Under the pieces are notes generated by a model that saw nothing but the letters and a program-made list of their open reading frames with translations, ran no database searches and was not told the DNA's origin. This document shows positions 1,480 through 51,281 of a DNA stretch of 64,000 nt, in pieces (the first letter of the stretch is position 1; every line of letters begins with the position of its first letter). The position numbers and the translations under genes were made by a program. The stretch is taken from IMG/VR virus record IMGVR_UViG_3300032245_001746, positions 1 to 64,000 of that record, one strand, 5' to 3'.

Positions 1480-1938
1480 ATGAATGAAATGAATTTTAAA
1501 TTATTTATTGAATCTAATGAATTTGAAAAAGACGTTAAAAAAATGTTAAAACGTTTACCTGCAGATCACTCCAAACTTGTAAAAGGATATAAATTTGAAA
1601 AACAAGATGACAATGTTTTGAAAAATGATCCTAAAAATGTTGGAGAAATTGATGAAAAAAATAAAATTATAAAAATTTCTTCACCTTGGAACTATTCAAG
1701 ATCATTTGTGGCTTTACATGAAGTTGCACATGCGGTATGGAAGTACATTCTAAATGACGAAATGAAAAAATCATGGAATGAATTAGTAAAAAAAGAAAAG
1801 AAAACAAATAAAAATAAAGATGGATTGAAACAAAATTCAGAAGAAATATTTTGTATGATTTATGCACAATTTTATTGTGACAACAAAATGGAAAAATATA
1901 ATTATCCTAATTTAGAAAAATTTGTAAAATCAATTTAA
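1480..1938 (+). CDS. Zincin-like metallopeptidase with capsid-targeting-like N-terminus
   Basis: LHEVAH (HExxH) plus downstream EEIF; N-terminus NFKLFIES. Confidence 0.6.
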   Translation: MNEMNFKLFIESNEFEKDVKKMLKRLPADHSKLVKGYKFEKQDDNVLKNDPKNVGEIDEKNKIIKISSPWNYSRSFVALHEVAHAVWKYILNDEMKKSWNELVKKEKKTNKNKDGLKQNSEEIFCMIYAQFYCDNKMEKYNYPNLEKFVKSI

Positions 1939-1950
1939 AATAAAAATATT

Positions 1951-3279
1951 ATGAAAAATTTAGAATTCAGAAAGTTTTACGTAGAAATGTCGCAACTAAA
2001 CAATCAAAAAGAGTTGTTGAAAGAAATAATATACAATCTTATAAATGGCAACAAATCATTTTTTTCAAAAAAAGGAATTTTAGCTCAAGAAAAAAGTGAT
2101 TATTGGATATTAAATTATTTAAATGGAAACGATAACAAAAACGAATACTCCAAATTAGTAAGAGGACTAGTTGTTAAAAAACCAGATGAAAATTACAACA
2201 ATGATCCTTTAACTTTAATAAATTCATTTCCTTTTACAAGATTTTTCAATAAAAATGAGCCACAAGCAGATCCTGTGGATTTAATAAATTCAGAAATGAT
2301 TGAAAAATTAGATGGAACTATGGTAGGAATTTTCTTTCCAAATAAAAATCCAAATAATCCAGAATTTCATACAAGAAAAATGTTGTCCACACATGGACCA
2401 GATATGAATTTAAATATGAGAACATTTTCTGGAGAAAATGTAACATATTTAAAAATAATCAAATCTTATGTGAATAAATTAAAGTTTTCTCAAAAAGATG
2501 TTGAAAATACATACGTATTCGAATTCATACATTCAACTTCTAAAGTTGTTACAAAATATACACCTGATCAGTTTGGATTATATTTAATAGGAGGAAGAAA
2601 TTTAATTACACATGAAGAATATTCTGAATCTGATTTAAATAAAATTGCACATGAAATTAATTCTAAACGCCCAAGATTATTTCAAGCAATTGCAGATCAT
2701 AATGAAATTACAAAAATGTTTAAAAAAGCTGCAGAATCAACACCTGATTTTGAGGGATTTATATTTAGAGATAAAAAAACTGGATCTCGCGTTAAAGTGA
2801 AAGATCCAAATTATGTTAAAAAACATCATGTATTAGAAAAAACAAACATAAAATCTTTAATTCCTGTTGTTTTAAACAATGAAGAAAATGAAGTTTTATC
2901 ATATTATCCAGATGTATTACCTAAAATTAAGTTAATTAAAGAAAAAATAAAACAATTCAAAAAAGAATTATTGGAAAAAGTACTTTATTGGAAAGATAAA
3001 AATTTAGATAAATCAACTTTGGCATCCATGTTTTTTGCAAAAAAAACAGGAAATAGATGGGACACAACATCTGAAAAACCAAAATATAAAGAAGAACCAG
3101 AAGTAAGATATTTCATAATGAAACATGTGAACAAATCTAAAGATCAAATCCAAGAAGAAATTAATAAAGAAATCAATACAATGGTATTTGGATTTAACAC
3201 TAATTTTGGAAATATTAAACGATTTATGGAACTCGTTGGAATTGAAGATAATGATGAGCCAACAGAAAGACAAGAATGA
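1951..3279 (+). CDS. T4 Rnl1-like RNA ligase
   Basis: FPFTRFFN, motif I EKLDGT, FEF, FEGFIF, RVKVK nucleotidyltransferase motifs. Confidence 0.85.
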   Translation: MKNLEFRKFYVEMSQLNNQKELLKEIIYNLINGNKSFFSKKGILAQEKSDYWILNYLNGNDNKNEYSKLVRGLVVKKPDENYNNDPLTLINSFPFTRFFNKNEPQADPVDLINSEMIEKLDGTMVGIFFPNKNPNNPEFHTRKMLSTHGPDMNLNMRTFSGENVTYLKIIKSYVNKLKFSQKDVENTYVFEFIHSTSKVVTKYTPDQFGLYLIGGRNLITHEEYSESDLNKIAHEINSKRPRLFQAIADHNEITKMFKKAAESTPDFEGFIFRDKKTGSRVKVKDPNYVKKHHVLEKTNIKSLIPVVLNNEENEVLSYYPDVLPKIKLIKEKIKQFKKELLEKVLYWKDKNLDKSTLASMFFAKKTGNRWDTTSEKPKYKEEPEVRYFIMKHVNKSKDQIQEEINKEINTMVFGFNTNFGNIKRFMELVGIEDNDEPTERQE

Positions 3280-4025
3280 TTTTAATAAAAAATAAAGAAC
3301 AAATTGATGGTATAAGAAAAAGTTGCCAATTAGCAAAATTAACACTAAATTATTTAGAACAATTTTTAGTTGAAGGCAACACTACAGAATTTATAAATCA
3401 AAAAGCCCACGAATTTATATTAAAAAATAATGCAATACCTGCACCTTTGAATTACAAAGGATTTCCAAAATCTATTTGTACTTCAATCAATGAAGTTGTT
3501 TGTCATGGAATTCCATCTGAAAAAGACGTGTTAAAAAATGGGGATATTATCAATATTGATGTTACAACAATATTAAATGGATATTATGGAGATACCAGTA
3601 AAACTTATAAAATAGGAACTTGTTCTTTAATTGCAGAAAAATTATTAAAAGTAACAAAAGAGTGTTTAGATATAGGAATTAAACAAGTTTATCCTGGTAA
3701 TCATTTTGGAAATATTGGTTATAAAATAAGTCAACACGCTGAACAAAATGGATTTTTTGTAGTTTATACTTTTGCTGGACATGGCGTTGGTGTCGAATTT
3801 CATGAAGAACCTATCGTATCTCACGTTTCTAAAAAAAATACTGGTCCAATTATGAAATCAGGAATGGTTTTCACAATTGAACCAATGATATCAGAAGGAA
3901 CCGCAGATTTGTTAATTTGTGAACAAGATGGATGGACAGCTAGAACGGCTGACAATAAATTATCAGCCCAATTTGAACACACCATACTTGTAACTGATTC
4001 TAAACATGAAATATTAACTATATAA
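3276..4025 (+). CDS. map: Methionine aminopeptidase type I
   Basis: CTSINEVVCHGIP, NIDVT, GDTS, GHGVG..FHEEP, FTIEPM, SAQFEHT. Confidence 0.97.
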   Translation: MILIKNKEQIDGIRKSCQLAKLTLNYLEQFLVEGNTTEFINQKAHEFILKNNAIPAPLNYKGFPKSICTSINEVVCHGIPSEKDVLKNGDIINIDVTTILNGYYGDTSKTYKIGTCSLIAEKLLKVTKECLDIGIKQVYPGNHFGNIGYKISQHAEQNGFFVVYTFAGHGVGVEFHEEPIVSHVSKKNTGPIMKSGMVFTIEPMISEGTADLLICEQDGWTARTADNKLSAQFEHTILVTDSKHEILTI

Positions 4026-4761: not shown

Positions 4762-4762
4762 A

Positions 4763-4990
4763 TTATTCTACTTTCAAATCAAAAATTCCAAGTTCCATAT
4801 AGCACTCTATTTTTTCATTTCCAACATCAATCAACACTGGTGATGTCTTACCATTAATAGAGACGTTATTTTTCATTTCTTCAACAAATAAATTTGCTTT
4901 TTGTCTATCAAAAAAAGCTTTTTCTGGTTTCACAAAAACATATTCTCCACTGATCTGTCTAGCTACACTTATTACTATACTTATTTCCAT
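4763..4990 (-). CDS. Hypothetical protein
   Basis: ORF in coupled minus-strand run. Confidence 0.6.
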   Translation of the reverse strand: MEISIVISVARQISGEYVFVKPEKAFFDRQKANLFVEEMKNNVSINGKTSPVLIDVGNEKIECYMELGIFDLKVE

Positions 4991-6037: not shown

Positions 6038-6409
6038 ATGATAGTTAATAATGAATTAAAATTCAAACAATTTTTTAAAGAAGATTCAAATTTAACAAGC
6101 ATGTTATCACCAAACATCGAAAAGAGTCCAGATATAACGAATGGACCTGATAGATTTGGCGTAGAAAAATTGCGAAGTTTAGTTTTACCAATTGTTACAA
6201 CAACTTCTCAAATTAGATTTATTGATGAAAGCAAATCACCAATTTTAATACAATTAAAAAATGGAACTAAATTGTATTTAAGTTATGATCAATTTAAAAA
6301 ATTGAACAATCCCGAAGTGGGCAAAAATATTACAGTTGAATTTATAAGAAATCCAGAAAATAAAAATAAAAATATTACTTCTAAAATTAATAAAATTACC
6401 ATTCATTAA
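6038..6409 (+). CDS. Hypothetical protein with capsid-targeting-like N-terminus
   Basis: LKFKQFFKED; AATATATA 4 nt upstream of ATG. Confidence 0.6.
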   Translation: MIVNNELKFKQFFKEDSNLTSMLSPNIEKSPDITNGPDRFGVEKLRSLVLPIVTTTSQIRFIDESKSPILIQLKNGTKLYLSYDQFKKLNNPEVGKNITVEFIRNPENKNKNITSKINKITIH

Positions 6410-6642: not shown

Positions 6643-6654
6643 AAATTATTCCTG

Positions 6655-7692
6655 TTAATTAGTTTTTGTTTTAGATTTTAAATCTAAAATAGAATCACAA
6701 GGATATTTATCCTCAAGTTCTTGTAACTCTTTTAATTTATTTAAATATTCCTCATTTAATTCATTATTTAATTTAGCTAATTGTAAATTAATTATTATAT
6801 CCCCAAAAACACCAGTATCATTTGATAAACCTTCTCTTTGAAGTCTTAATTTCATTCCACTATTAACATTTTTAGGTATCATTACATCTAAAGTTCCATT
6901 TAAATTAGGAATTGTAATTTTACCTCCAAAAAATAAAGTAGTGTAATTTACAGGAATTTTACAATGAAGATTTAATCCATCTCGTTCAAAAAAATCATGT
7001 TTTGTAATCTTTATTATAACAATTAAATCACCTCTATAATCTGTGCCTATACTGCCTTTTCCTCCTATAACCATATAGGAATTATCTTCTACACCTTTAG
7101 GAAAATTTAAAGAAATATTTTCATTTTCGCAATCAACACTGCCATTTACACATTTCTTACATTTATCTTGAAATTTACGACCTGTTCCATTGCATTCAAT
7201 ACAATCTGTTCTAATTGTAAATGTTTGATTTTTATTTTGATCATATTTAACATTTATTTTACCAGCACCAGCACATTTATTGCAAACAAAAATCTTTTCC
7301 CAACTTGTTCCATTACAATTATCACAAGGTTTTTTGACTGGAAGAGATATAGTTTTTGAACATCCCGTTGAAACTTCTTCCAAAGTTAATTCTACAACAA
7401 ATTTAACATCTAAACTTTGTCTATATCGTTGACGATTAATCGCCTCATTATATTGAGCAAAAACATCACCAACAGTAGCGTAACCAGAAGATGGATTATC
7501 GTATCTGTTACGTTTGTTTGGATCACTTAAAACGTCATAAGCTTCTATAACATCCTTATGTTTTTCTTCAGCTTGACTGTCATCTTTATTCAAATCTGGA
7601 TGATATTTTTTTGCAAGTTTTTTATAAGCTTTTTTAATATCTTCTTGTGAAGCATCTTTAGAAACTTCTAAAATTGAATAATAATCTTTCAT
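6655..7692 (-). CDS. dnaJ: DnaJ co-chaperone
   Basis: J domain with HPD, CxxCxGxG zinc-finger repeats, C-terminal DnaJ domain. Confidence 0.95.
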
Positions 7693-7711
7693 TAAAACAA
7701 ACCTTAAAAAG

Positions 7712-7741
7712 AATAAGAAGAAGTTTAAACTTCTTCTTATT
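7712..7741 (-). terminator. Perfect 30-bp palindrome, likely intrinsic terminator after groES
   Basis: AATAAGAAGAAGTTT/AAACTTCTTCTTATT followed by T-run on minus strand. Confidence 0.7.
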
Positions 7742-7767
7742 AATATTTTTATAAATAAAAAAAATGA

Positions 7768-8121
7768 CTATTCTTCTACTAAAACACACTTGATCATATC
7801 TGGCAAAATCATATTTAATGATCTTCCATTTTTAGAGAGAATACCATCTACAGGAAAATAAGATCCTGCAACCATCACTCTATCGCCCACCTTGAAACCA
7901 AGATTTGGAGCAACACTAGGTCCAATATCCAAAACATAAGCTTGTTGAGAATCTTTTTTATTTGCTTCATCGGTAAGCAAAACAGATGTGGGAGATAATT
8001 CTACCTCTTTAATTCTTTCAATAAGAACCTGATTATTTGCTGGAACTACAGCAGTAATCATCCTTGGTACATTCATTACAACACTTGTTGGCTCGGTTAC
8101 AACATCTTTATTTTTTTTCAT
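7768..8121 (-). CDS. groES: GroES/gp31-like co-chaperonin
   Basis: PANNQVLIE, VLDIGP, FKVGDRVM, MIKCVL match the Cpn10 pattern. Confidence 0.8.
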   Translation of the reverse strand: MKKNKDVVTEPTSVVMNVPRMITAVVPANNQVLIERIKEVELSPTSVLLTDEANKKDSQQAYVLDIGPSVAPNLGFKVGDRVMVAGSYFPVDGILSKNGRSLNMILPDMIKCVLVEE

Positions 8122-8164
8122 TTTATAATTCTTTCTTAAAAACAGTTTAAATTAAACTAGTATG

Positions 8165-8716
8165 TTACGCTGTTTTTTTTGGAATTAAAACACAATTTAA
8201 ATTATTTCCTTCCAATTTAGGATCAATTTCAACACTAGAAACTTCTGACAAAGCCTCTTTTATTTTTTGTAAAACATTGTATCCTAATTCTTTATGAGCA
8301 TTTTCTCTTTTTTCATATTTCAAATTAAATTTGACTTTTAATCCAGAAGTTAAAAACTTTTTAGCAGCATTAATTTTAACATTAAGATCATGATCTCCAA
8401 TTGAAGGACTTAATCTTATTTCTTTCTCAGATAAAGCTTTTTGGCTTTTATTCTTTTCTTTTTGTTTAATAGATTTTTCATATTTAAACTTACTATAATC
8501 CATTATTTTACAAACAGGAGGATTTGCCATTGGTGATACTTCTACCAAATCTAGATTTTGATCTCTTGCAATTTTTTTTGCTGCATCTGTTGAGAATACG
8601 CCTAAATTTTTATCACCATCTACCAACATAACCTTTGGAACTCTAATCATGTCGTTAATTCTTGTTTTATCTTTTGAATTAAAACTATTTTCATTTTTGA
8701 TAAATTTTTTTAACAT
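8165..8716 (-). CDS. infC: Translation initiation factor IF-3
   Basis: RINDMIR, LDLVEVSPMANPPVCKIMDYSKFKYE, KEIRLSPSIGDHD. Confidence 0.97.
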   Translation of the reverse strand: MLKKFIKNENSFNSKDKTRINDMIRVPKVMLVDGDKNLGVFSTDAAKKIARDQNLDLVEVSPMANPPVCKIMDYSKFKYEKSIKQKEKNKSQKALSEKEIRLSPSIGDHDLNVKINAAKKFLTSGLKVKFNLKYEKRENAHKELGYNVLQKIKEALSEVSSVEIDPKLEGNNLNCVLIPKKTA

Positions 8717-18626: not shown

Positions 18627-21260
18627 CTATATTACAATTAATTCTGGTTTCTTTTTAGGCTTAACAACATCCATAAAAGGACGCTTCATTACTAATAATC
18701 TAGTATCATCTTCTTTTTTTTCTGGAATTTCTTTCCATCTAATAGCTTTAGGAGGACTGTCAAATGTATAATTCTTAAAAGGAGGTTCTGGTTTCTTTAA
18801 CCTTATTTTAAGGAAATTACCTTTTCTAATATCAGACTCCCAATATTCTAAATCAGAAGCAAATCTTTGATAATCGACATCCCAAAAAGTTACTTTAAAT
18901 TTAAAAGAATCGGAATCCTCCATAGTAACCTCATAATATACAGTACCTTTAGCAGATTCTTTACGCTTTGGTTTTTCTATAACCTGCGCTTCAACCATAG
19001 AAATACAAATATTATCTTTAGAATCAAAATCAGAAATGGTAAATCCACCAGAATAATCTGGACTTGAGTCCATCAAATGATTCCAACTAAATCCATAACA
19101 AGAAGATTCTGCGACTTGTACTGGTTCATTAAACAATTTTTGCAAATCTTCATCAATTTCTACTTGAATATCAAATTCATCTAATGACAACAAAGAATCT
19201 TGCTCATTTTTAAGAACATTGCTTTCTTTGGATTTTTTATATTTCTTCAATAACTTCCAAGTTTCATGTATTATATCTTTTTGTTCGTTTGAATCAATAA
19301 TTTCTTCACGAAACTTAAAATCATTAAATGATTTAAATGAAGTTTCATCAAAATTTTCAAATTTATCAAAAAATAATTCTGAGAATTCATCTTCAAAAGA
19401 AACTTTCAATTCCAAAATTAATTTAGAAACACTTTTAGCATATCGATCATTTCTTGACGAAATCTTTTTTTGCTCTTCTTTAAAGTATTCATAATATGAA
19501 TATAATTTAGTTCTGTCTGCGTCTTTAAATAATCCAAGAGAAATTAAAGGTTTTAAAACCTTTGCATCTGTACCGAATCGACTTAAAAAATCAACAAATG
19601 AAGAATATGGTTGATTTTCAACAATTCTTTGTGCCACTTCTTCTCCTATTCCTTTTATATTAGAAAATCCAATATAAATTTCATCATCAACAATAGAAAA
19701 ATTATCTTTAGACTTATTCAAATCTAAAGGTTTAATTTTTACATTCATACTTTCAGCTTCTCTTCTATATTCTTTTATTTTAACATCATCTTTTACAGAT
19801 TTTAATATTCCAACAAAAAAATCTAATGGATAATGTGCTTTTAAATATAAAAGGCGAGCAGACAAAATTGTGTAACAAACAGCATGACTTGAATTAAATC
19901 CATATTCGGCAAAAGCTTCTATTTGAGTCCACAATTCTTCAACTTGTTCTTTTGTCCAAGCTAAAACTTTTTGTCCATTTTCAATAAACATATCTTTATA
20001 TTTTTGAAATACTTTAACTTTCTTTTTGGAAATTGCTTTTCTTATTATTTCACAATGCATTTCTGGAATTCCGCCAACAACATTCAATATTTTTAATGTT
20101 TGCTCCTGAAAACACATAACACCATAAGTTTTTTTCAAAATTGGCTCTAATACTGGATGCAATTCATAATATTCTCTTCCCTTTTTTCTTTCAATAAAAC
20201 GTTCATCCATTTTCATAGATAATGGACCTGGACGGTAAATAGACGAATAAATTACCAAATCATAAAAAATATCAACACCACCCTTTTTAACCATTTCTCT
20301 AATACCATCAGAGTCAAACTGAAATATGCATTTTAATCTACCTTGATTCGCTAAATTTAATGCTTTCAAATCAGTAATATAAGCATCTTCATTAGACCAG
20401 TCTGGACAGTTTTCATAAGCACAAATAGAACTTATTCCCAATCTTTGTTTGACAGATTTAGTTATTTGAGCCAACTGTGTTAGATTAGATAATCTTAACG
20501 TATCTATCTTAATAAGACCCAAAGGTCCCAAATCAGTTCCTAATAATCCTTCACCAAAAGCAGAAACATATTTATCACTTTCTGTTTTAACGAACGGAAC
20601 TATATTGTCAATTCTTTGATTTGAGATAATCAAGCCACCAGCATGAGTGCCAACTGTTTTGTTTCTGTTAATTATTCTTCTTACTACATCTGCAACTTCT
20701 GGATTTTCTTCGCAATATTTGCGTAAGTCTGGATATTCCTCAATTGCTTTATCTAAAGATAAAACTTTTCCATCTTCATCTTTAAGACCAATTTTTGTAG
20801 TTATATTTAATATTTCATTACGATCTTTATCGTAAACCCTTGCAGCATCTAAAAATGATGATTTAATCTTAAATGTTCCATATGTTCCAATTGCACATAC
20901 ATTATCTTCACCAAACGTTTTTGGTGCCCAAACATTTCTTATGTAATCACATACTTCATCCTGAAAGTCCGTATCAATATCAGGAAATTCGCCCTGAACC
21001 ATTCGTGGCTCAATATTTATGTCAAAATTATCAACCATACCTAAAAGGTAAGTTATCAACAAATTATTTTCATTATTTTCAAACTTATCGCCATTTTTAA
21101 ATAATTCAAAAATATAATCAAATTCCATTTGATTATCAATTTGTTTGATTTCGTATAAAAGTCGGTCTTGATGTTTTTTATCTTCATTTAATCCAAGTTG
21201 CTTTAATTTTAAATAACAAGCACTTATTATCTCTTTTTTTGGATCAACAGAAACACTCAT
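18627..21260 (-). CDS. dnaE: DNA polymerase III alpha, C-terminal (catalytic Asp, fingers, HhH, OB) subunit of split DnaE
   Basis: PDIDTDF, HAGG, KIDTL, IFQF, YRPGP, QEQ, AEYGFNSSHA, HhH IKGIG; no PHP domain. Confidence 0.93.
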   Translation of the reverse strand: MSVSVDPKKEIISACYLKLKQLGLNEDKKHQDRLLYEIKQIDNQMEFDYIFELFKNGDKFENNENNLLITYLLGMVDNFDINIEPRMVQGEFPDIDTDFQDEVCDYIRNVWAPKTFGEDNVCAIGTYGTFKIKSSFLDAARVYDKDRNEILNITTKIGLKDEDGKVLSLDKAIEEYPDLRKYCEENPEVADVVRRIINRNKTVGTHAGGLIISNQRIDNIVPFVKTESDKYVSAFGEGLLGTDLGPLGLIKIDTLRLSNLTQLAQITKSVKQRLGISSICAYENCPDWSNEDAYITDLKALNLANQGRLKCIFQFDSDGIREMVKKGGVDIFYDLVIYSSIYRPGPLSMKMDERFIERKKGREYYELHPVLEPILKKTYGVMCFQEQTLKILNVVGGIPEMHCEIIRKAISKKKVKVFQKYKDMFIENGQKVLAWTKEQVEELWTQIEAFAEYGFNSSHAVCYTILSARLLYLKAHYPLDFFVGILKSVKDDVKIKEYRREAESMNVKIKPLDLNKSKDNFSIVDDEIYIGFSNIKGIGEEVAQRIVENQPYSSFVDFLSRFGTDAKVLKPLISLGLFKDADRTKLYSYYEYFKEEQKKISSRNDRYAKSVSKLILELKVSFEDEFSELFFDKFENFDETSFKSFNDFKFREEIIDSNEQKDIIHETWKLLKKYKKSKESNVLKNEQDSLLSLDEFDIQVEIDEDLQKLFNEPVQVAESSCYGFSWNHLMDSSPDYSGGFTISDFDSKDNICISMVEAQVIEKPKRKESAKGTVYYEVTMEDSDSFKFKVTFWDVDYQRFASDLEYWESDIRKGNFLKIRLKKPEPPFKNYTFDSPPKAIRWKEIPEKKEDDTRLLVMKRPFMDVVKPKKKPELIVI

Positions 21261-30162: not shown

Positions 30163-30660
30163 TTAATATCTGGAATAATCGTACGCTTTAAATTTTCCAC
30201 TTTTAGTTGAACCAACTTGACAACAATCATATTCATTAGCCCAATCTGGCAGATCTTTGTAAGGATGATCTATATTCAATTTTTCCATGATAATAATTGG
30301 AATTCTTGTTTTATTTAAAAAAAACATTTTGCAATTTGCATGTTGCATATTATTTCTTGAATTATATTCATCTTCATTTGAAGCCATTCCTGTTTCACAA
30401 CTTGGAACTTTAATCACAACATTTCTGTTCTTATTGATAAAAGTACACCTGTGTCTGCCGCATTCTGGATATTTGCCAAATCCAAATTTCATTAAAAACT
30501 CTGTACACTTTGGAAGAAAAACATTTTGCCAAAAACCTTGATCTTCAAATTTATATTTAGAATAAATTCCATTATTTAATTCATTAAATAAAAATTCATC
30601 TAACTCTTGAATTGAATTTGCTAACGATTCATTAATCATATATAAACTAAAATTTAACAT
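30163..30660 (-). CDS. Minimal protein-kinase-fold protein with capsid-targeting-like N-terminus
   Basis: GRHRCTF...VIKVP...NEDE...IIME...DCCQVG...AYDY; start MLNFSLYMINES. Confidence 0.5.
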   Translation of the reverse strand: MLNFSLYMINESLANSIQELDEFLFNELNNGIYSKYKFEDQGFWQNVFLPKCTEFLMKFGFGKYPECGRHRCTFINKNRNVVIKVPSCETGMASNEDEYNSRNNMQHANCKMFFLNKTRIPIIIMEKLNIDHPYKDLPDWANEYDCCQVGSTKSGKFKAYDYSRY

Positions 30661-30958: not shown

Positions 30959-31909
30959 ATGTTTAAAAAATTTAAATCTTTCTTAGAAGAAAAAGAAAAA
31001 TCATTAGTTGGTGATGTAAAAACAAAATTGGTCGCAGATTACGAAGGACCAGAAGAAAAATATCCACCATCAAATGGCAAAAAAGAAAAAGTAGCACCAT
31101 ATAAAACTCCAACATCAAGTGTTGATCCTAATAAAAAAGAAAAAGGATTAGCTGATTTAGGAGATGGCGATTTAGTGTATGAACCAGATATTCATGGAGA
31201 AAAAGAAAAAAACTTAGGTAATTATCCTAAATCTAAAAATGAAGCATTCATTGAAAAAACTTCAAAACTAGACAATAAAACATTTATTGAAATGATGCTT
31301 AAAAAGAATAAAAAAAATAAAAGTTTAATGGAAGGTCCAAAAAATCCAAACAACAAATTTGAAGTAATTAAATTCGTTGCAGACCTTGCAGCTAAAGATA
31401 AAACATGTGTTGAAAACTTTATTCATGATTCTAAAAGAAGCGGATCTTTAAAAGGTTTACTTGAATATGCATTAAATTTAACAGAAACATATGAAATATT
31501 AGCTGAATTATTTCAAGATAAAACACAAGGAAACTCCAGATTTAATCGATTAGAAAGAGCTTTAGAACAAGTTGGATTGCCACAACATAAATCATCAGAT
31601 TTAGAACTTAACAAAAAATCAAGTATGGATGACATGGACGACGATGATATGTCTCCAGATGATGATATGGATGGTATGGACATGGATGATGAAGATATGG
31701 ACGACGATATGTCATCAGATGAAGACATGGATGATATGGATATGGATGATGAAGATATGGACGACGATATGTCATCAGATGAAGATATGGATGATATGGA
31801 CATGGATGATGATATGTCACCAGATAAACATCCAAATAAAATGAAATCACATGATGATATGGGAGTTGGAATGCTTAAAAAGAATCCTTTTTCTAAAGGA
31901 TTTAAATAA
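30959..31909 (+). CDS. Putative internal head protein with Asp/Met-rich repeats
   Basis: MFKKFKSFLEE N-terminus; MDDEDMDDDMSSDED repeats. Confidence 0.65.
   Translation: MFKKFKSFLEEKEKSLVGDVKTKLVADYEGPEEKYPPSNGKKEKVAPYKTPTSSVDPNKKEKGLADLGDGDLVYEPDIHGEKEKNLGNYPKSKNEAFIEKTSKLDNKTFIEMMLKKNKKNKSLMEGPKNPNNKFEVIKFVADLAAKDKTCVENFIHDSKRSGSLKGLLEYALNLTETYEILAELFQDKTQGNSRFNRLERALEQVGLPQHKSSDLELNKKSSMDDMDDDDMSPDDDMDGMDMDDEDMDDDMSSDEDMDDMDMDDEDMDDDMSSDEDMDDMDMDDDMSPDKHPNKMKSHDDMGVGMLKKNPFSKGFK
31625..31822 (+). repeat. 60-bp tandem repeat (~3 copies) encoding D/M-rich 20-mer
   Basis: atggatgatgaagatatggacgacgatatgtcatcagatgaaga... at 60-nt period. Confidence 0.9.
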
Positions 31910-32780
31910 TTTTTCTTAATTCATATCTAATAAATGGTCCAGATCTACTGCCTTCTCTTGGAGAAGACAAGGTATACAAATTATTATAAGATCCATTATC
32001 ATCTTTTAAAGGAATATATTTATAAACAAAGTCTAAGGTGCCTGCCTTAGACTTTGTTGGCGTTAACATCCAAGCGTGTTTTATTTCTTTGGAACTTAAT
32101 TTACCAATATGTGCAAATTCTGAGAAAGGAATTGCATCTGGCATATCTTGATGACTTTTCACATTATCTCTTGATATTGCAATTACAATAGAAGGTTTTT
32201 TAATAGATGTTTGAAATTGCATTGGAGCAAAACCATTAGCATAATATTCTGCTGTTTCTGCAGAGCCATAGAAAGTTAAATCATTTTGAATATCTCCCAA
32301 ATTATAATCATTTCTGCTTTGAATAAATCCATTTTTTCTTATGAATTGCCATTCTTCATAAGACATTCCTCGATAAACCAAATTTGGATCTTGTGGAATT
32401 TCTTTAACAGCATCTTTTGGAGATTTATGCAAATAATAACCTGTTTTACCGCCATTGTGTTTTAAATCTAAATGATAAAAATCCCCATTTGGATCAGCCA
32501 TTTCTGGCTTTCTAAATAACTTTGGTTTATTTTGAAAAGAAAAAATAATTTCACTATATCCAGAATGTATTTTCTTCAAAAAAATATCATATCTGTCTCT
32601 AAAATTAGTAAATTCATTTCCATAATATTGGTGAAAAGATTTTCTAACAAATTGTTTTAATTCATCTGAATTAACATTTTTAACAGGTCTCATTCCTGGA
32701 CCTACAACTAAAGGAAATTCTTTTATATCATTATTAATGTAAATAGATTCAGAAAATAACCAATCTTTAAAATTAAACAT
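31902..32780 (-). CDS. Putative ADP-ribosyltransferase-fold protein with capsid-targeting-like N-terminus
   Basis: VYRGMS, LTFY...AEYYA, SEF; MFNFKDWLFSES. Confidence 0.45.
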   Translation of the reverse strand: MFNFKDWLFSESIYINNDIKEFPLVVGPGMRPVKNVNSDELKQFVRKSFHQYYGNEFTNFRDRYDIFLKKIHSGYSEIIFSFQNKPKLFRKPEMADPNGDFYHLDLKHNGGKTGYYLHKSPKDAVKEIPQDPNLVYRGMSYEEWQFIRKNGFIQSRNDYNLGDIQNDLTFYGSAETAEYYANGFAPMQFQTSIKKPSIVIAISRDNVKSHQDMPDAIPFSEFAHIGKLSSKEIKHAWMLTPTKSKAGTLDFVYKYIPLKDDNGSYNNLYTLSSPREGSRSGPFIRYELRKII

Positions 32781-32784: not shown

Positions 32785-33057
32785 TTATTTATGTTTAATT
32801 AATTTGTTTAATTTGATATTTTCATCAAAATAAATAGTAATTGATCCTTTATATTTAGTCTCATATGGAGCACCTTCAAAACGCTCTAGATGAACTACAT
32901 TATCAAATTCATCTGTAATATAAAAACCATAAAACAAAAAACTTGAATAAAAAACAAATTTATTTTTTCCAAATTTCAATTTATTACAAAAACTATATGG
33001 ATTATTAATATCAGAATAAAGATTAATTTTATAATTTTGGTTCATGAAAATGGACAC
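32785..33057 (-). CDS. Hypothetical protein
   Basis: 90-aa ORF. Confidence 0.5.
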   Translation of the reverse strand: MSIFMNQNYKINLYSDINNPYSFCNKLKFGKNKFVFYSSFLFYGFYITDEFDNVVHLERFEGAPYETKYKGSITIYFDENIKLNKLIKHK

Positions 33058-35666
33058 TCCTCTGTTGATCCATTTTTTATAATATCAATATTTGCACTAA
33101 GTTTTTTAATTGGATCTGAAGAAAATCTAATTTTCATAGATTTACCACCACGTGCAGGACTTAAAAATCTAGAAAACAATAAATCATGTTTTATAGGATC
33201 AACATCAATTAAACCTAAAGCATAAGCTACTAAACTACCTCCAATAGAATTATGTACTAAAAAACTACTAGTTAAATAATTATGATTATCCTCTATTTCT
33301 AGATCATAAACAAATTTTGGACCTTTAATCTCTTTAATAGATTTAATTCTCAACATCAAACCATCTTTTGTTGATCTCCACACATATTTTTTATTACAAT
33401 TTTTTGAACATCCTATTCTAACATCTAATGGACAATATAGAACATATGATGGAGAAATATTTTTATAATCTTCTCTCAAATCTGTTCTTGTATATTTTTT
33501 AATAGAACATGGCAAACCTATTCTTAATAATAAAAATCTAATTTGCTCTGCTAGTTTATATGAAACAGTTTCAAATTTTGCTTTACCCTCATCTTCATAG
33601 CCATCTGCTAAAAAATATCCACGTAAATATGATTCCACAATGGATACGGGTGCATTTAATATGCAATCAGGAACATATTTACTGTGAGATGTATGTTCAT
33701 ATTCTGGATGTAGTTCGTCAAACAATTTCCTCAAATAAGGAGAGGAAAAAATTGTTTGTATTAAACTTTTATTTTTAGATAAATATTCTTTACAATTAAA
33801 ATTGTAATTTTTCATTAATGAACAAACTTCATTTATGTGTTTTCTAATTAGAGAATTATCACAAAATCCAACCTTTAAAGATCCATCAGAATTAGTCCAA
33901 CCATCACCAACAAAAACTCCCAATATAAATGCCCAATCTTCATTAAGACTCCAAATTCTATTATTTTTTATAGAAGTTTTTCCACCTTTGGAATTAAAAG
34001 TACTTACAACAAAGTTATCATCAAATGATAATTCGCTACCATTTTTAGATTTTCCTTTTGAAAATTTTGATAAATCCACCGTGTAATTTTCAACAACCTC
34101 TACTTTAGGAAAAGGCACAAAACACCAATCTCCAACAGACAATTCCTGTGCTTGAAACCAATCCAAATCTTGAGTAGGTTCTATCCAACATTTTCTAGAT
34201 TTTTTTGTAGAGTCAGACCATTTATCCCAATTTTTGGGTCTTTTTGATTTTTCAGCATATATTTTATGGTCTAAAGTTAACGTAACGCCAACTTCATCTC
34301 CATAATATGTCCTGATTTTTCTAACATTTTCATTAAATGGATACTTCATTGTTTTTAAAACTTTTTTAACAGTTCCATCAACAGTCCATATTTTATCACC
34401 AACTTTAATATTTTTTAATATATTTGTACTTCCATTTTTTAAACGAATTGGAGTATTATGTTTCAAACAGCCCCTGCCTGGTCCGACAGCCTCTGAGCCA
34501 TCGCCCCATCCTAATATTAGTGGAGAAACTCTTCTAGCTTCATCAGTAATCATTTTTTGAACTAAAAAGTAAGAACAAAAACCTTTTTCTTTAATCAACT
34601 CATATTCTTCTTTAATTCTATTGAAGTACTGTTTAGTTTTTGGTATTTTTTTAAATTCAAAACCTTGTTTTATTGCATCTAACAACTTCTGATCATCGTT
34701 TTCAAATGATGGAAATTTAATTGTTCTATCTATTTGAAATTCAACGCCTTTTGCCAATTCACAAATTTTAACAGTATTTTGTTTTGCTTGTTTAAAGATA
34801 TCATAATCCATTACGTCTTGATAATCAGACAACCATTTTTCATTTATTTCTTCTTCAGATTTCATCCAAAGATTTTGATCTTGTATTTCAAATACATCTC
34901 CATCTTCAACAAGTTTTTGTTCAACTTGTTTCATTGTTTTACCCATTTGCATCATCATCATGATAGACTGCATTTTCATATCTTCTTTAAGACAGACGTG
35001 ACAATCATTTGTAATGATAAGTGGTAAACCATATCTTTCTGCTGCTTTCATAATAAAAACATCATATGGTTTTTGTTTTTTAAAATCCAACAACATCATT
35101 TCCAAATAAAATTTATCGTGAAACATATTTTTGTATATTTCAACCATTTTAAATCCAGCTTCTTCGCCACCTTTATCGAAAGCTTGTCCTATTTCGCTAT
35201 TATAGCAACATGATGTAAATATAATTCCTTCTTTGTGTTCTACCAATTGTTGTCTATTAACTCTCGGTTTATAATAAAATCCTTTTTTATATCCAAGAGT
35301 AGATAATTTTACTAAATTTGAATAACCTGTAACGTTGTAAGCAATACCTAATAAATGATATGATTTTTTAAAAAATGGTTTTTGATCTTCAGACATATCT
35401 TTATAAAACAAAGAACTTTCACCATGTTTTAATTCTGTTTGAAGCGGATTAACATATAATTCACAAGCAAAAATTGGACTAATTTTATTATCTTCACATG
35501 TTTTAATTTGTCTTGGGACTGCACCCATAACACCATGATCTGAAATAGTTAAAAATTTTTGATTAATTTGCTTTGCTCTTGCTGCATATTCGTCTGGCAA
35601 GCCATAACCATCAAGAAGACTAAAATGACTATGTAAATGTAAATGTTCAAAACCAGTTATTTCCAC
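33042..35666 (-). CDS. dnaE: DNA polymerase III alpha, N-terminal PHP + partial palm subunit of split DnaE (intein-containing)
   Basis: HLHSHFSLLDG, SDHG, KPR, NDCH; GPGRG/S, GSLVAYALG, LLFSRFLSPAR; ends before PDID. Confidence 0.93.
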   Translation of the reverse strand: MEITGFEHLHLHSHFSLLDGYGLPDEYAARAKQINQKFLTISDHGVMGAVPRQIKTCEDNKISPIFACELYVNPLQTELKHGESSLFYKDMSEDQKPFFKKSYHLLGIAYNVTGYSNLVKLSTLGYKKGFYYKPRVNRQQLVEHKEGIIFTSCCYNSEIGQAFDKGGEEAGFKMVEIYKNMFHDKFYLEMMLLDFKKQKPYDVFIMKAAERYGLPLIITNDCHVCLKEDMKMQSIMMMMQMGKTMKQVEQKLVEDGDVFEIQDQNLWMKSEEEINEKWLSDYQDVMDYDIFKQAKQNTVKICELAKGVEFQIDRTIKFPSFENDDQKLLDAIKQGFEFKKIPKTKQYFNRIKEEYELIKEKGFCSYFLVQKMITDEARRVSPLILGWGDGSEAVGPGRGCLKHNTPIRLKNGSTNILKNIKVGDKIWTVDGTVKKVLKTMKYPFNENVRKIRTYYGDEVGVTLTLDHKIYAEKSKRPKNWDKWSDSTKKSRKCWIEPTQDLDWFQAQELSVGDWCFVPFPKVEVVENYTVDLSKFSKGKSKNGSELSFDDNFVVSTFNSKGGKTSIKNNRIWSLNEDWAFILGVFVGDGWTNSDGSLKVGFCDNSLIRKHINEVCSLMKNYNFNCKEYLSKNKSLIQTIFSSPYLRKLFDELHPEYEHTSHSKYVPDCILNAPVSIVESYLRGYFLADGYEDEGKAKFETVSYKLAEQIRFLLLRIGLPCSIKKYTRTDLREDYKNISPSYVLYCPLDVRIGCSKNCNKKYVWRSTKDGLMLRIKSIKEIKGPKFVYDLEIEDNHNYLTSSFLVHNSIGGSLVAYALGLIDVDPIKHDLLFSRFLSPARGGKSMKIRFSSDPIKKLSANIDIIKNGSTEECPFS
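33249..34469 (-). mobile_element. LAGLIDADG intein in DnaE-N (407 aa)
   Basis: GRG|CLKH...TLDH...VYDLEI...VHN|S; GVFVGDG and RGYFLADG. Confidence 0.92.
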
Positions 35667-42988: not shown

Positions 42989-43173
42989 AAAGAAATTTCT
43001 TTCGAATCAATAATAAAATACTGATTATAATTTGGTATGTTTAAATATTCAATATAACTCAAACAAATATCTAACATTTGTTTTGCAATTTCTATATTTT
43101 GCGTACACCAAATTCCAGTTTTTGGAAAAGATAAATAATTATTGGATATAGTATTTAATATATAATAATTCAT
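42985..43173 (-). CDS. Hypothetical protein
   Basis: Coupled ORF. Confidence 0.45.
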   Translation of the reverse strand: MNYYILNTISNNYLSFPKTGIWCTQNIEIAKQMLDICLSYIEYLNIPNYNQYFIIDSKEISL

Positions 43174-43331
43174 ATTATAGGCTTGCTTTTAAGATTCTTA
43201 ATTAAAGTAGTTTTAGTTTTTGGTTTTTTAAAACTATTTAATGGTTTTTCTGGAAGCCAGAAGTGTTGTCCTGCACGCCCAGGTTTATTGAGTCCAAATG
43301 ACTCGAAATAATCCTTAAAATTCAATTGCAT
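43173..43331 (-). CDS. Small basic protein with capsid-targeting-like N-terminus (52 aa, missed by ORF track)
   Basis: MQLNFKDYFESFGLNKPGRAGQHFWLPEKPLNSFKKPKTKTTLIKNLKSKPI; TAATG coupling at both ends. Confidence 0.7.
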
Positions 43332-43591
43332 TAAACTGGGTCCTTATCATCATCTGATACTGGCATTAATGCTCCCAACTTATTTAATGGAACATTGGGA
43401 TTTTTAACAACAGATTGTTTTGCAGCAACTACAGGATTTTGTCCCTTTTTAATTGCTGTAGCGGCAGCAGTTTTTGCAGCAGTTGCTGCGGCAGCCAAAA
43501 CCGGATTTGATGCAATCTGTTTTTGTGTATTTTGTTGATTACCTGGAGCCATCATATCTTCCAGCCAATTTTTGAAATATAAATTTTCCAT
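43331..43591 (-). CDS. Ala-rich protein with capsid-targeting-like N-terminus
   Basis: Start MENLYFKNWLED at 43591; AATATATA 5 nt upstream. Confidence 0.65.
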   Translation of the reverse strand: MENLYFKNWLEDMMAPGNQQNTQKQIASNPVLAAAATAAKTAAATAIKKGQNPVVAAKQSVVKNPNVPLNKLGALMPVSDDDKDPV

Positions 43592-45276: not shown

Positions 45277-46029
45277 ATGGAATTTAATTTCAAAAAATAT
45301 TTTTTAAACGAAATGCCAATTGATAATTTAAAATTAATTGGTAAATGGGGAAATAATGATCCTTTAAGGAGATTTACTAAAATTGATGCTGGAATCTTAA
45401 CTAGTCCTAAAGGAGTGGAAAAAATAAAACAAAAATGGTCAAGAACAGAATATAATTTCAATTTATATTTTGTTCGAGAAAAAAATGCTTGGAAAGAATC
45501 GTTCGTTGGAGAAGTTAACATAGAATATGTTAAACAAAAATTAAATTTAGAATTACCTGAATTAAATGATGATTCAATAACTATAATTTATACCAATAAT
45601 ATTGGTCAAGAAAAACAACCATTAACTGGCTGGACATTAGCACATAGATTTTCTCACGCACTTGTAAGAAATGAATTTTATAAAAATAATTATGTTAAAG
45701 AATTAACAAGATTAATTAATGAATTAAAAGAAGATTTTGGATTAAAATTTTTCAAAGAAATAGATTATTATTATAATCTAGGAACTATGAAATCATGTAG
45801 AGAAAGAAATTTAGCTACACCATTAGAATTTCAACATGAATTGTTTGCACAATTTATAATTAACGGAAAAATAAATTTCAACAAATATGAAAATTGGAAA
45901 TTTGTTAATAAATCAGACAAAGCCTTCAATTCTGAAATCAATCAATTTTTAGAAATAAAAGAAAGAGATTTTGATTATCAAATCAGTTCGGTACTGGGGA
46001 CTTTGCATAATAAAATATTTATTGTTTAA
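45277..46029 (+). CDS. Zincin-like protein with capsid-targeting-like N-terminus
   Basis: MEFNFKKYFLNEM; LAHRFSH...HELFAQ; TATAAATA 4 nt upstream. Confidence 0.55.
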   Translation: MEFNFKKYFLNEMPIDNLKLIGKWGNNDPLRRFTKIDAGILTSPKGVEKIKQKWSRTEYNFNLYFVREKNAWKESFVGEVNIEYVKQKLNLELPELNDDSITIIYTNNIGQEKQPLTGWTLAHRFSHALVRNEFYKNNYVKELTRLINELKEDFGLKFFKEIDYYYNLGTMKSCRERNLATPLEFQHELFAQFIINGKINFNKYENWKFVNKSDKAFNSEINQFLEIKERDFDYQISSVLGTLHNKIFIV

Positions 46030-47204: not shown

Positions 47205-47217
47205 AAATTTAAAATTT

Positions 47218-48206: not shown

Positions 48207-48240
48207 ACTGCAACTTTCTGTTTTTAAATCTAATTTATTT

Positions 48241-49629: not shown

Positions 49630-49728
49630 AAACTCCAAAAATATAAAATCTTATATTTATATAAGATAGAATTTATTTTTATTTAATTTGTTTTAAATGT
49701 AATTTACATTATTTTAAAAATATTTATG

Positions 49729-50661
49729 TCACACTGCAACTGGAATTTCTAACTTAGGACCACACTTATAATCACTCAACACAAAGTCGTTCAATTTATA
49801 AGAGTAAATATCCTCTGCTTTATTGATTGTTAAATTTGGACAATCGTAAGAAGGCAATGAAAGATATTCTTCCATAGCAGGAATTTGATCCCAATAAATA
49901 TGAGAGTCAACAGTATAGTGAACAAACTCTGTTGCTTTATATCCAGTTTGTTGTGCAAGCATCATTGTTAATGCGGAATAAAACTGTATATTCGCTGGAA
50001 CTCCAATTGGAAAATCTGCTGATCTTTGGGTTAATGATCCAGTCATTTCGCCATTATCATCAATTGAAATCTGAAATGAATAATGACAACATGGAAGTTT
50101 CATCTTACTTACTTCTTTAGGGTTCCATAAAGAAAATAATATTCTTCTACAAGATGAATCTTCTTTGATTCTATTAACCATAAAGTCTAATTGATCAAAT
50201 CCTCCCGAACCATATTGATTTTTATTATATGTAGAGTTAAGATCTTCTCCACAAGGATCAAATGATACTTCATTAGTAAATTCTTTACCACCAATTCCAT
50301 TTCCGTAATATCCGCCAAAATGTCGAAGCTGAAATCCGTAAACGGGACCGAAAACTTTTTCAGCGTATCCATGTTTCTTTTCAAATTCAGGATCAACCCA
50401 AGGGTCCCAAATTTTGGCACCAAGTGCGTTTAAATCATTATTATTAGTAGAACCAGATATAAACCAAAGCAATTCTGCCCAAATAGATTTTGGCCAAATT
50501 TTTCTTTTAGTTACAAGTGGAAATGATTGTGTTAAATCATATCTACTTAAAATGCCAGGTAAAAATTTAGTTTTAATTCCTGTTCTCTTATTAGACTTTT
50601 CTTTGCCTTTTTTTAACAATAATTCTAAAGCTTCATCATATGGTTGAATTGCGTATGACAT
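49729..50661 (-). CDS. thyA: Thymidylate synthase
   Basis: RTG, FPLVTKR, ELLWFISG, GPVYGFQ.R, LPCCH, QRSAD..GVPAN, DSHIY. Confidence 0.95.
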   Translation of the reverse strand: MSYAIQPYDEALELLLKKGKEKSNKRTGIKTKFLPGILSRYDLTQSFPLVTKRKIWPKSIWAELLWFISGSTNNNDLNALGAKIWDPWVDPEFEKKHGYAEKVFGPVYGFQLRHFGGYYGNGIGGKEFTNEVSFDPCGEDLNSTYNKNQYGSGGFDQLDFMVNRIKEDSSCRRILFSLWNPKEVSKMKLPCCHYSFQISIDDNGEMTGSLTQRSADFPIGVPANIQFYSALTMMLAQQTGYKATEFVHYTVDSHIYWDQIPAMEEYLSLPSYDCPNLTINKAEDIYSYKLNDFVLSDYKCGPKLEIPVAV

Positions 50662-50736
50662 AATATCTTTCTTTAATAAATTCAAATCATACAACTTTAA
50701 CCAAAACTTCAATCAAGATCAACATTTTTTTATTGG

Positions 50737-50874
50737 TTACTTCTTTTTATCAAGTTTTTTCTTCTTGAATTTAATTAATTCAGTTGATAACGGCATTGCA
50801 AAATTTGCAACACATGAAGTTGATGTCATTTCTTCTAGCCATTTTTTAAATGATTTTAATTTTATTTTATTCAT
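50737..50874 (-). CDS. Small basic protein with capsid-targeting-like N-terminus (45 aa, missed by ORF track)
   Basis: MNKIKLKSFKKWLEEMTSTSCVANFAMPLSTELIKFKKKKLDKKK; TAATG coupling. Confidence 0.7.
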   Translation of the reverse strand: MNKIKLKSFKKWLEEMTSTSCVANFAMPLSTELIKFKKKKLDKKK

Positions 50875-51281
50875 TACATCATACCCGGAAGCATACCTTG
50901 AGTGTTACCACCCATTCCTCTTGTTAACATAGAATTTAACTTACTTATAGGAACAAATATTTTTTTATCTGAAACAGTATTAGATGGTGTTCTAAGATTA
51001 CCATCTGTTCCTTTATGGAATTTTTTTTGCACCATACCACCATCTATATTAAATGGTGTAATATAAGCGCCTTTCACATCTCCTCTTGCATCTTTTACAA
51101 ATTGGTTTATTAAATAATTAACACCATTAAAATGAAAATTTCCCATTTTCATTTCAGGCGACCAATTTGGAATTTTCTCTAATGCAGAAGGATCAATACC
51201 GAGTTCGTCCTGCAAAGAAGACATATAATTTGCCTTTTTTTCATAAGATTCCATAAAATCTTTAAATGATAATAATTCCAT
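50874..51281 (-). CDS. Hypothetical protein with capsid-targeting-like N-terminus
   Basis: MELLSFKDFMES. Confidence 0.65.
   Translation of the reverse strand: MELLSFKDFMESYEKKANYMSSLQDELGIDPSALEKIPNWSPEMKMGNFHFNGVNYLINQFVKDARGDVKGAYITPFNIDGGMVQKKFHKGTDGNLRTPSNTVSDKKIFVPISKLNSMLTRGMGGNTQGMLPGMM

Follow-up and report, generated by a model that had tools for sequence, protein, structure and literature searches.

Eleven genes of a huge phage share an N-terminal motif

The stretch of 64,000 nucleotides analysed here (the window) corresponds to positions 1-64000 of the IMG/VR contig IMGVR_UViG_3300032245_001746 (319,857 bp). The same phage is also represented by an ENA scaffold (scaffold_3, 530,789 bp), in which the window lies at about 83,103-147,102; since exact-protein matches place it in these two contigs, the window is part of an uncultured huge phage of 320-530 kb. 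Its GC content is 26-29% and its genes are densely packed, the majority being on the minus strand. Eleven of the encoded proteins (carriers 1-11) begin with a similar short peptide, here called the tag, which is probably a capsid targeting sequence (CTS) of the kind carried by the internal proteins of bacteriophage T4.

An initial annotation had listed eleven such N-termini, and every one of them was found at the start coordinate given there (Table 1). A simple open reading frame (ORF) call yielded 89 ORFs of at least 40 aa in the window. The pattern FK.[FWY].{1,2}E occurs within the first 15 residues of 7 of these and at 0 of 18,905 internal positions, while a looser pattern gives 11 N-terminal matches against 0.9 expected. 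The pattern F[KR].[FWY].{1,3}E is found in 10 of the 89 ORFs; shuffling of residues 2-25 predicts 0.29-0.30, with maxima of 3 in 2000 within-protein and 4 in 2000 pooled shuffles, and none of the 82 spurious ATG ORFs taken from this AT-rich DNA contains the pattern. The N-terminal enrichment therefore holds against shuffled controls (10 observed, 0.29 expected). A six-frame scan of the window disclosed no more convincing carriers.

The motif begins at residues 4-9 in 11 of 11 carriers. A Glu follows at +5 to +7 from the first Phe in all of them, with a hydrophobic residue at P3 each time, and the residue after this Glu is S, M, D, E or K. In an all-against-all BLASTP the carriers align by their N-termini only, which bears out the early impression that their bodies are unrelated, and the tag is indeed absent from replication and metabolic enzymes (0 among those identified by Pfam in the window). 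In the readable 113 kb of the window genome 15 of about 150 ORFs are tagged. The terminase, portal, capsid protein and replication genes are untagged, and no further carriers were found in the 10 kb beyond the portal or in the 9 kb to the right of the window.

Table 1 Tagged genes of the window. Distances are counted from the end of the box to the ATG; SD, Shine-Dalgarno sequence.
Carrier	Start	Extent	Strand	Length (aa)	Tag (position)	Residues after tag	Upstream signal
1	1480	1480..1938	+	152	MNEMNFKLFIE (1480-1512)	SNEF	SD
2	1951	1951..3279	+	442	MKNLEFRKFYVE (1951-1986)	MSQL	operon-internal
3	6038	6038..6409	+	123	MIVNNELKFKQFFKE (6038-6082)		TATATA box, 4 nt; no SD
4	30660	30163..30660	-	165	MLNFSLYMINE (30628-30660)		
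5	30959	30959..31909	+	316	MFKKFKSFLE(E) (30959-30988/30991)		SD
6	32780	31902..32780	-	292	MFNFKDWLFSE (32748-32780)	SIYI	TAAATA box, 5 nt
7	43591	43331..43591	-	86	MENLYFKNWLE (43559-43591)	DMMA	TATATA box, 5 nt
8	43331	43170..43331	-	53	MQLNFKDYFE (43302-43331)		operon-internal, no box of its own
9	45277	45277..46029	+	250	MEFNFKKYFLNE (45277-45312)	MPID	TAAATA box, 4 nt
10	51281	50874..51281	-	135	MELLSFKDFME (51249-51281)	SYEK	TATATA box, 7 nt
11	50874	50737..50874	-	45	MNKIKLKSFKKWLE(E) (50833-50874)	MTST	operon-internal

A motif model from a related phage recovers the T4 internal proteins

The closest GenBank phage record to the window genome is LR756511.1 (metagenomic, 595 kb, 42% GC), the one relative that is complete, with which it shares 66.7% identity in the capsid protein; no match was obtained when 22 kb were compared with the phage collection by megablast. 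In LR756511.1 the strict pattern is present at 22 N-termini, where about 2 are expected. These ORFs were used to seed a weight matrix of 12 columns, which was iterated and given a threshold (10.5) such that internal windows predict about one false N-terminal match. At this threshold 41 of 1130 ORFs are tagged, and 12 of 148,658 internal windows pass. The consensus of the tags is M-[KL]-[TNS]-F-[RK]-[QED]-[WFY]-[LFMVI]-E; the most informative columns after Met are column 0 (Phe in 43 of 43 tags, 4.4 bits) and column +3 (W, F or Y in 41 of 43, 3.8 bits), followed by L, F, V, I or M in column +4. Tagged proteins of LR756511.1 are mostly small (median 129 aa) and have few Pfam matches (HAD_SAK_1, tRNA_lig_CPD, Peptidase_C39 and HTH domains), and RNA-repair functions recur in the tagged cargo of this phage and of the window genome.

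The concept of the CTS has been established since 1996. The CTS of T4, MKTYQEFIAE (PMC8442874), is removed by gp21 and suffices for the packaging of foreign proteins (PMC8442874, PMC3012670, PMC5694885); amber-suppressor mutagenesis attributed targeting to its residues 4 and 7 and processing to residues 8 and 10 (PMC9026906). The internal proteins themselves are injected "first-response" anti-defence proteins (PMC9391042, PMC3012670). When the matrix, which had been derived from LR756511.1 alone, was applied to the 277 ORFs of the whole T4 genome, five and no more lay above the threshold, namely gp61.1 (MKTFKEFIKE), IPI (MKTFKEFTST), 57B (MMEFKDFSTG), IPII and IPIII (MKTYQEFIAE), with about 0.4 matches expected by chance and a next-best score of 7.8. 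All three proven CTS carriers of T4 (IPI-III) are thus recovered by a matrix derived from a megaphage relative. The targeting residues 4 and 7 of the T4 CTS fall on columns 0 and +3 of the tag, and the processing residues 8 and 10 on column +4 and the Glu.

The two other T4 genes that score as CTS carriers are gene 61.1 (NC_000866, 18966-19130, minus strand; MKTFKEFIKEDMV) and gene 57B (NC_000866, 73952-74410, minus strand; MMEFKDFSTGLY), the latter adjacent to ipI.

Tagged genes are found in other phages too. Six tagged ORFs lie within 20 kb of L008, a 430-kb relative with 42% GC, and ORFs that combine the tag with the promoter-like box described below were found in independent IMG/VR contigs, which have 25-49% GC and reach 458 kb in length; several of these ORFs adjoin T4-type portal, capsid, protease or TerL genes. 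The expansion is not general to jumbo phages: in CM1 (319 kb), a cultured jumbo phage with a T4 head, only 3 ORFs score above the threshold.

T4-type head genes and a prohead protease in the same genome

A scan of IMG/VR for the box, an ATG and F-K-x-W disclosed another locus of the window contig, and matching of its protein led to a region of the scaffold (L126, scaffold positions 259,421-280,203) in which head genes stand in T4 order: Portal_T4 (with an intein), a 600-aa ORF, a Peptidase_S77 protease, a 308-aa ORF at the place of the scaffold gene (gp22 in T4) and a Gp23-family capsid protein (Pfam E 1.7e-88). The gp21 counterpart, which the initial annotation had left to be located, lies within this portal/protease/capsid module (L126:15227-15946, minus strand). 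It matches Peptidase_S77 with an E-value of 3.5e-26 (92 bits against a cut-off of 27) and shares 29% identity with T4 gp21 (BLASTP, E 1e-20). Its His92 and Ser145 align with His85 and Ser140 of T4 gp21, and its segments GELDHP and GISSRG resemble GELNHP and GVSSRG of T4. Four further tagged ORFs are present in the 20 kb of L126 (MNFKIWIE, two MNFKEWLI paralogues and MLTFKDYLKKE), the last of which sits between the portal and the protease block.

Candidate processing sites are seen in the head proteins themselves. The capsid protein starts with MSGNNVFLNE followed by A in the window genome and with MSANAKFLNE followed by A in LR756511.1, and its similarity to mature T4 gp23 starts directly after LNE-52. 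The protease has GFLNE before M at residues 28-32 in the window genome and LLNE before F at residues 7-10 in LR756511.1. These [FL]LNE sites fit a T4-like hydrophobic-x-Glu specificity, which is no proof that they are cleaved. LR756511.1 encodes homologues of T4 gp20, gp21, gp23, gp17, gp13, gp4 and gp25, and no homologue of T4 gp43, gp45, gp55 or gp33 was detectable in it.

The tag is conserved as a peptide and behaves as a module

LR756511.1 has no homologue of carrier 6, and orthologues were therefore compared among metagenomic proteins. Carrier 6 has 19 homologues (35-67% identity), of which 16 keep M-x-x-F-[KR]-x-[WF]-hydrophobic-x-x-E; the Glu is kept in all tagged orthologues, and two distant, high-GC homologues lack the tag. 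All 26 orthologues compared for carrier 9 retain E12, including those in which Leu/Ile have come to replace the aromatic part. The synonymous codons in the tags (TTT/TTC, AAA/AAG, CAA/CAG, AAT/AAC) follow genome-wide usage, which indicates that selection acts on the peptide and not on the DNA. In the AlphaFold2 (AF2) models of carriers 6 and 9 the body is predicted with confidence, and the tag precedes it as a short helix of low confidence.

The RNA-ligase family of carrier 2 delimits the module. Many homologues begin with ...F-[KR]-x-F-L-[VI]-E-M-E-T-T and many others are called from M-E-T-T. In the RNA ligase of L144 the upstream tagged start was missed by the gene caller (MKVLISPLSFREFLVE followed directly by METT), while the orthologue of L142/L143 has a strong SD and an in-frame stop codon before METT, which makes it truly untagged. 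Since tagged and truly untagged orthologues meet at the junction of Glu and Met, the tag is an add-on that ends exactly at the Glu. Likewise, the body family of carrier 4 has 374 representative homologues, among which the tag is confined to the closest relatives.

Public calls for many of the RNA-ligase orthologues (P0020-P0128; L144:2850-3000) start at the Met after the tag despite the upstream tagged start; databases would thus under-report the tag, because automatic callers appear to miss tagged starts that have no SD. The idea that the Met after the tag is a general vestigial start or the start of a second isoform was rejected, since it is found at 6 of 344 positions, which is background level; in the window, Met directly follows the tag in the RNA ligase and three other carriers only.

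The bodies of the carriers

Pfam, PHROGs and NCBIfam searches with the carriers gave nothing beyond a weak ATLF match, sequence searches of the PDB with carriers 2, 6 and 9 gave no match, and relaxed Pfam searches on two alignments (A1 and A2) returned noise plus one Tpt1 hint (E 0.02). The cargo labels of the initial annotation fared unequally. That of an RNA ligase is confirmed by sequence comparison: carrier 2, as a member of the Rnl1 family, has the KxDG motif EKLDG aligned to KEDG of T4 RnlA, 25% identity to RnlA over 239 aa (E 4e-6) and 110 homologues, most of which match PF09511 (many PF09511/PF09414); the protein itself has no Pfam match at E<0.01. Carrier 1, the first gene of the operon shared with carrier 2, contains an HExxH motif (HEVAH) and matches the Pfam family ATLF with an E-value of 1.1e-5, below the curated cut-off, so that a zincin-like nature is weakly supported. 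Its orthologue in L144 is tagged (MDLDFKYFLE) and has a TAAATA box upstream. The designations "kinase-like" and "second zincin" are unproven. The latter concerns carrier 9, whose body has an invariant AHRFxHA and two Glu (AF2 predicted local distance difference test score, pLDDT, 91.1; below 50 for residues 1-8) and gave no significant match in a fold search.

The label of an ADP-ribosyltransferase (ART)-like protein depends on fold matches of carrier 6, for which neither a Pfam match nor a PDB sequence match was found. In its AF2 model (pLDDT 91.4) the tag is a low-confidence helix at residues 4-10. Foldseek against the PDB returned pertussis toxin S1 (probability 0.90) and DarT (0.72), which are not significant (E>0.09, template modelling score <0.4). 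Matches in BFVD reached E-values of 8e-12 to 1e-3, and include several Bacillus phage G proteins and mycobacteriophage polyvalent-type proteins with a "ParB-like nuclease domain"; weaker matches were to a fusion protein with a "head morphogenesis domain" (E 0.02) and to a putative RNA 2'-phosphotransferase (E 0.03). A tblastn match was to a "large polyvalent protein". Residues Y136-R137-G138, S155 and E221 are invariant in the family. On these models, an ART-superfamily-like domain is weakly supported for carrier 6, and the domain recurs within phage polyvalent and head-morphogenesis fusion proteins.

As for the remaining bodies, carrier 3 has no Pfam, PHROG or NCBIfam match, carrier 4 belongs to a widespread small-protein family with the signature GRxR...VIKVP...MEKL, and carrier 7 is Ala-rich. 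The small basic peptides of the initial annotation are upheld in carrier 8 (10 K+R against 1 D+E) and carrier 11, which has a tagged homologue in the IMG/VR locus L106. Carrier 5, without a Pfam, PHROG or NCBIfam family match, is net acidic (79 D+E against 46 K+R), with a Lys/Glu-rich middle part and a C-terminal third that contains a repeat of about 90 aa made up of Asp, Met, Glu and Ser (DDMD..MSSDEDMDD units). This acidic tail is reminiscent of that of the T4 prohead core protein gp67; a 103-aa acidic ORF also lies near the terminase gene (L152:2423-2734).

Twice in the window the stop of one tagged gene overlaps the start of a second tagged gene by 1 nt (at 43331, carriers 7 and 8, 86+53 aa; at 50874, carriers 10 and 11, 135+45 aa). 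The second gene of each pair encodes a small basic peptide, and the pairs look like translationally coupled cargo pairs.

A promoter-like box close to the start codon

A TA[AT]ATA box, which resembles the T4 late box TATAAATA, precedes many of the 43 tagged ORFs of LR756511.1: in 20 of them 4-5 nt separate its end from the ATG, and in 27 the distance is 4-8 nt, whereas only 21 of 1087 other ORFs have the 4-5 nt spacing. The association of the box with the tag has a Fisher p of 7e-8. An SD is rare before tagged ORFs (4 of 21, compared to 484 of 1109 others). In the window the box stands at 4-5 nt before carriers 3, 6, 7 and 9. Head genes have a similar box 20-30 nt upstream, plus an SD. Because the box ends 4-5 nt from the ATG and the T4 late box spans -13 to -6 (PMC2988020), the transcript would start at the ATG or directly beside it, and the mRNA would be leaderless. 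Late-promoter-like motifs had been noted in front of several carriers at the outset. The boxes are present and resemble the T4 late box; the late timing is our conjecture, as no homologue of gp55, gp33 or gp45 was detected in LR756511.1, and the box also precedes a few genes that are unlikely to be late. A 159-aa sigma factor encoded next to the window was considered as a gp55-like protein and rejected: it contains sigma regions 2 and 4, and it does not resemble gp55 in sequence.

Other genes of the window and its surroundings

Among the Pfam matches in the window are a DnaE polymerase (in two ORFs), GyrA, intein-containing GyrB and RecA, a PrkA/DUF444/SpoVR operon and a bifunctional sugar kinase/nucleotidyltransferase; existing annotations add PhoH, DnaJ, Cpn10, IF3, dCMP deaminase and an M24 aminopeptidase. 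The two DnaE ORFs are about 12 kb apart (33042-35666 and 18627-21260, both on the minus strand), the first with the PHP domain, a LAGLIDADG intein and the start of pol III alpha, the second with the remainder (NTPase, finger and HHH), and could be a split or trans-spliced replicase. Inteins with homing endonucleases are found in GyrB and RecA (24232-27498 and 60772-63108, both minus strand) and in the T4-type portal (L126:18225-20735, minus strand). The PrkA/DUF444 (YeaH)/SpoVR operon, complete on this phage (36766-41773, minus strand), corresponds to a bacterial trio linked to stress and sporulation. An M24 methionine aminopeptidase gene lies directly 3' of the tagged zincin/RNA-ligase operon (3276-4025, plus strand), and DnaJ, Cpn10 and IF3 are encoded as well (6655-8716, minus strand); the IF3 gene is worth mentioning in a phage that seems to have many leaderless-looking starts. 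To the right of the window, L153:8947-9915 and L153:2273-3562 encode a T4-type gp32 single-stranded DNA-binding protein (PF08804), a DnaB helicase and a DNA_pol_A fragment. Since these adjoin the DnaE and gyrase genes, T4-like and bacterial-like components are mixed in the replication toolkit.

Discussion

We consider it likely that the shared N-terminus is a T4-type CTS, which would load varied cargo into the head for injection. The first 10-15 residues would make up a short amphipathic segment, M-x(1-7)-F-[KR]-x-[WFY]-[LFMI]-x(0-2)-E. Its two aromatic residues would attach to the scaffolding core of a T4-type prohead during assembly, and any protein with the tag would in this way be built into the head. 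The gp21-type prohead protease would cut after the Glu, P3 being always hydrophobic, and the mature cargo would be retained in the DNA-filled head, would enter the host with the DNA and would act there ahead of any phage gene expression. The putative cargo would then consist of the Rnl1-type RNA ligase, one zincin-like and one ART-fold protein, the acidic repeat protein, the small basic peptides and several further proteins. The initial annotation had already compared the N-termini to the CTS of T4, and this comparison gains support, at the level of sequence, from the retrieval of IPI-III by the model, the coincidence of its columns with the residues identified by mutagenesis, the gp21-type protease and the modularity of the tag.

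Several points weigh against this proposal. For an uncultured phage, packaging in the virion, cleavage at a given site and injection are proposals made from sequence, and the late timing and the effector roles are likewise what we infer. T4 gp61.1 and 57B, which are not known to be packaged, also match the model, so that a match to the tag is not proof of packaging. The 308-aa ORF, our candidate for the scaffold, shows no sequence similarity to T4 gp22, and as a consequence the partner that would bind the tag is deduced from gene position. The term "late promoter" likewise reflects the similarity of the box, given that gp55, gp45 and gp33 went undetected in LR756511.1. The gene starts are those of our own simple ORF caller. 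The number of carriers far exceeds that of T4 (15 in 113 kb; about 41 in LR756511.1), and one head may not hold them all; the acidic repeat, Ala-rich and basic-peptide carriers may be components of the core or of DNA packing and not effectors.

The last point can be extended to most of the carriers: the tag may direct proteins to the prohead, where the majority would serve as structural or transient core components (scaffold accessories, charge-balancing acidic and basic peptides, DNA-condensing proteins), degraded or kept for assembly, instead of as effectors in the next host. T4 prohead core proteins and gp24 also carry short propeptides cleaved by gp21 (PMC5694885); carrier 5 has a long acidic tail, as has the T4 core protein gp67, which ends in EDSDEDEDDE; carriers 8 and 11 are small basic peptides, and several tagged ORFs lie in or beside the head module. 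The Rnl1 RNA ligase, zincin-like and ART-fold carriers, however, have no obvious role in assembly, the tagged cargo of LR756511.1 includes Peptidase_C39, HAD_SAK_1 and tRNA_lig_CPD, and the T4 bearers of the exact motif (IPI-III) are injected anti-defence proteins, so that we hold a predominantly structural set to be unlikely. Still less can be said for a fate away from the capsid, with the tag acting as a membrane-binding amphipathic helix, a degron for a chaperone or protease, or an inhibitory propeptide unrelated to the capsid. Such a role would accord with a short amphipathic helix and with the DnaJ, Cpn10 and M24 aminopeptidase genes nearby, but the motif is statistically indistinguishable from the T4 CTS as defined by experiment and picks out the T4 internal proteins, a matching T4-type prohead and protease are encoded in the genome, and several lineages have their tagged genes grouped with head genes; we regard it as very improbable.

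That the peptide is a by-product of a nucleotide element (a promoter, an initially transcribed region or a translation enhancer of leaderless mRNAs) is suggested by the box at 4-5 nt from the ATG in nearly half of the tagged ORFs of LR756511.1 (20/43) and before carriers 3, 6, 7 and 9, and by the rarity of SD sequences (4/21 against 484/1109). Such an element would not explain why synonymous codons in the tag are used as in the rest of the genome and why the aromatic column mixes TGG, TTY and TAY; moreover, the operon-internal carriers 2, 8 and 11 and the SD-led carriers 1 and 5 are tagged without a box, and T4 ipI, ipII and ipIII are SD-led yet encode the same peptide. We find this explanation hardly credible. 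Codon bias has even less to recommend it: the window is AT-rich (26-29% GC), as are the codons of Phe, Lys, Asn and Glu, but a chance product is refuted by the shuffles (10 against 0.29 expected), by the absence of the motif from internal positions and from the 82 spurious ORFs, and by the repetition of the enrichment in the 42%-GC relative. AT bias, which the initial annotation had named as one condition that would overturn its reading, is excluded because the tag is enriched at 42% GC and is found in contigs of up to 49% GC.

A T4-type CTS thus being the preferred explanation, the differences from T4 itself deserve attention. The likeness lies in an N-terminal peptide of about 10 residues with aromatics at 0 and +3, then a hydrophobic residue and Glu, placed before unrelated bodies, and in the gp21-family protease and Gp23/portal head module of the same genome. 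The differences are that, against the 3 proven carriers of T4, the 64 kb of the window have 11, the readable 113 kb of its genome have 15 and LR756511.1 has about 41; that the first aromatic is Phe here and Tyr in IPII and IPIII (IPI has Phe); that 1-8 residues precede the motif and the Glu is at +5 to +7; that in many genes 4-5 nt separate the box from the ATG and there is no SD, whereas the T4 ip genes are SD-led; and that sizeable enzymes are among the cargo and replication is DnaE/gyrase-based, unlike that of T4. The feature probably belongs to the known CTS/internal-protein system of T4, about ten-fold larger in number, in a lineage of huge phages that have a T4 head together with replication genes unlike those of T4. 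No publication linking the CTS to huge phages was found in the literature searched.

Other head-loaded proteins offer further comparisons. T4 Alt is an ADP-ribosyltransferase that is packaged into the head, trimmed by gp21 and injected. Carrier 6 resembles it in having an ART-superfamily-like domain and a propeptide-like N-terminal tag that ends in Glu; however, the N-terminus of Alt (MELITE) scores -2.7 on the tag model, the ART assignment of carrier 6 is at fold level and weak against the PDB, and a phmmer search with Alt found no similarity in LR756511.1. The cargo-loading peptides of encapsulins are short terminal peptides that load unrelated cargo into an HK97-fold shell; unlike the tag they are usually C-terminal and uncleaved, involve neither DNA nor injection and are unrelated in sequence. 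In phiKZ, 201phi2-1 and SPN3US many head-internal proteins are targeted by N-terminal propeptides, which a gp21-related protease cuts after Glu (PMC5694885, PMC9026906), but those propeptides are mostly longer than 100 residues and end in S/A/G-x-E, whereas here they have 10-15 residues, a hydrophobic P3 and a shared motif. Polyvalent and head-morphogenesis fusion proteins are described, by Iyer et al. 2017 as cited in PMC7824862, as delivering counter-defence enzyme domains with the DNA. The domain of carrier 6 recurs inside such proteins, which unite many domains in one giant polypeptide; here small separate genes each have their own tag.

One further reading is possible, if doubtful: in megaphages of this T4-headed clade a TATA-like box, an ATG 4-5 nt on (leaderless) and the CTS might form a portable cassette that can be grafted before any start codon. 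The RNA ligases favour it, because their tagged and untagged orthologues meet exactly at Glu and Met. If so, dozens of enzymes, including RNA-repair enzymes and proteases, would become pre-made cargo, the half-megabase phage would arrive with a multi-enzyme counter-defence kit, and the tag would be a genome-readable list of the injected effectors of uncultured phages.

The T4 CTS is the classic route for loading proteins that act at infection, and the proven cargoes of T4 are anti-defence proteins. An ATG this close to the box, as if the transcript were leaderless, is an oddity of gene expression in its own right, and genes 61.1 and 57B are flagged as CTS candidates in T4, a laboratory model. 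For phages of 0.3-0.6 Mb that cannot be cultured, a sequence rule can list the likely injected proteome, and such a list would narrow the choice of candidates for new functions in host takeover and counter-defence. In the present case it includes proteases, RNA-repair enzymes and an ART-fold protein. With it, the head-assembly paradigm of T4 would extend to phages whose replication machinery is unlike that of T4.

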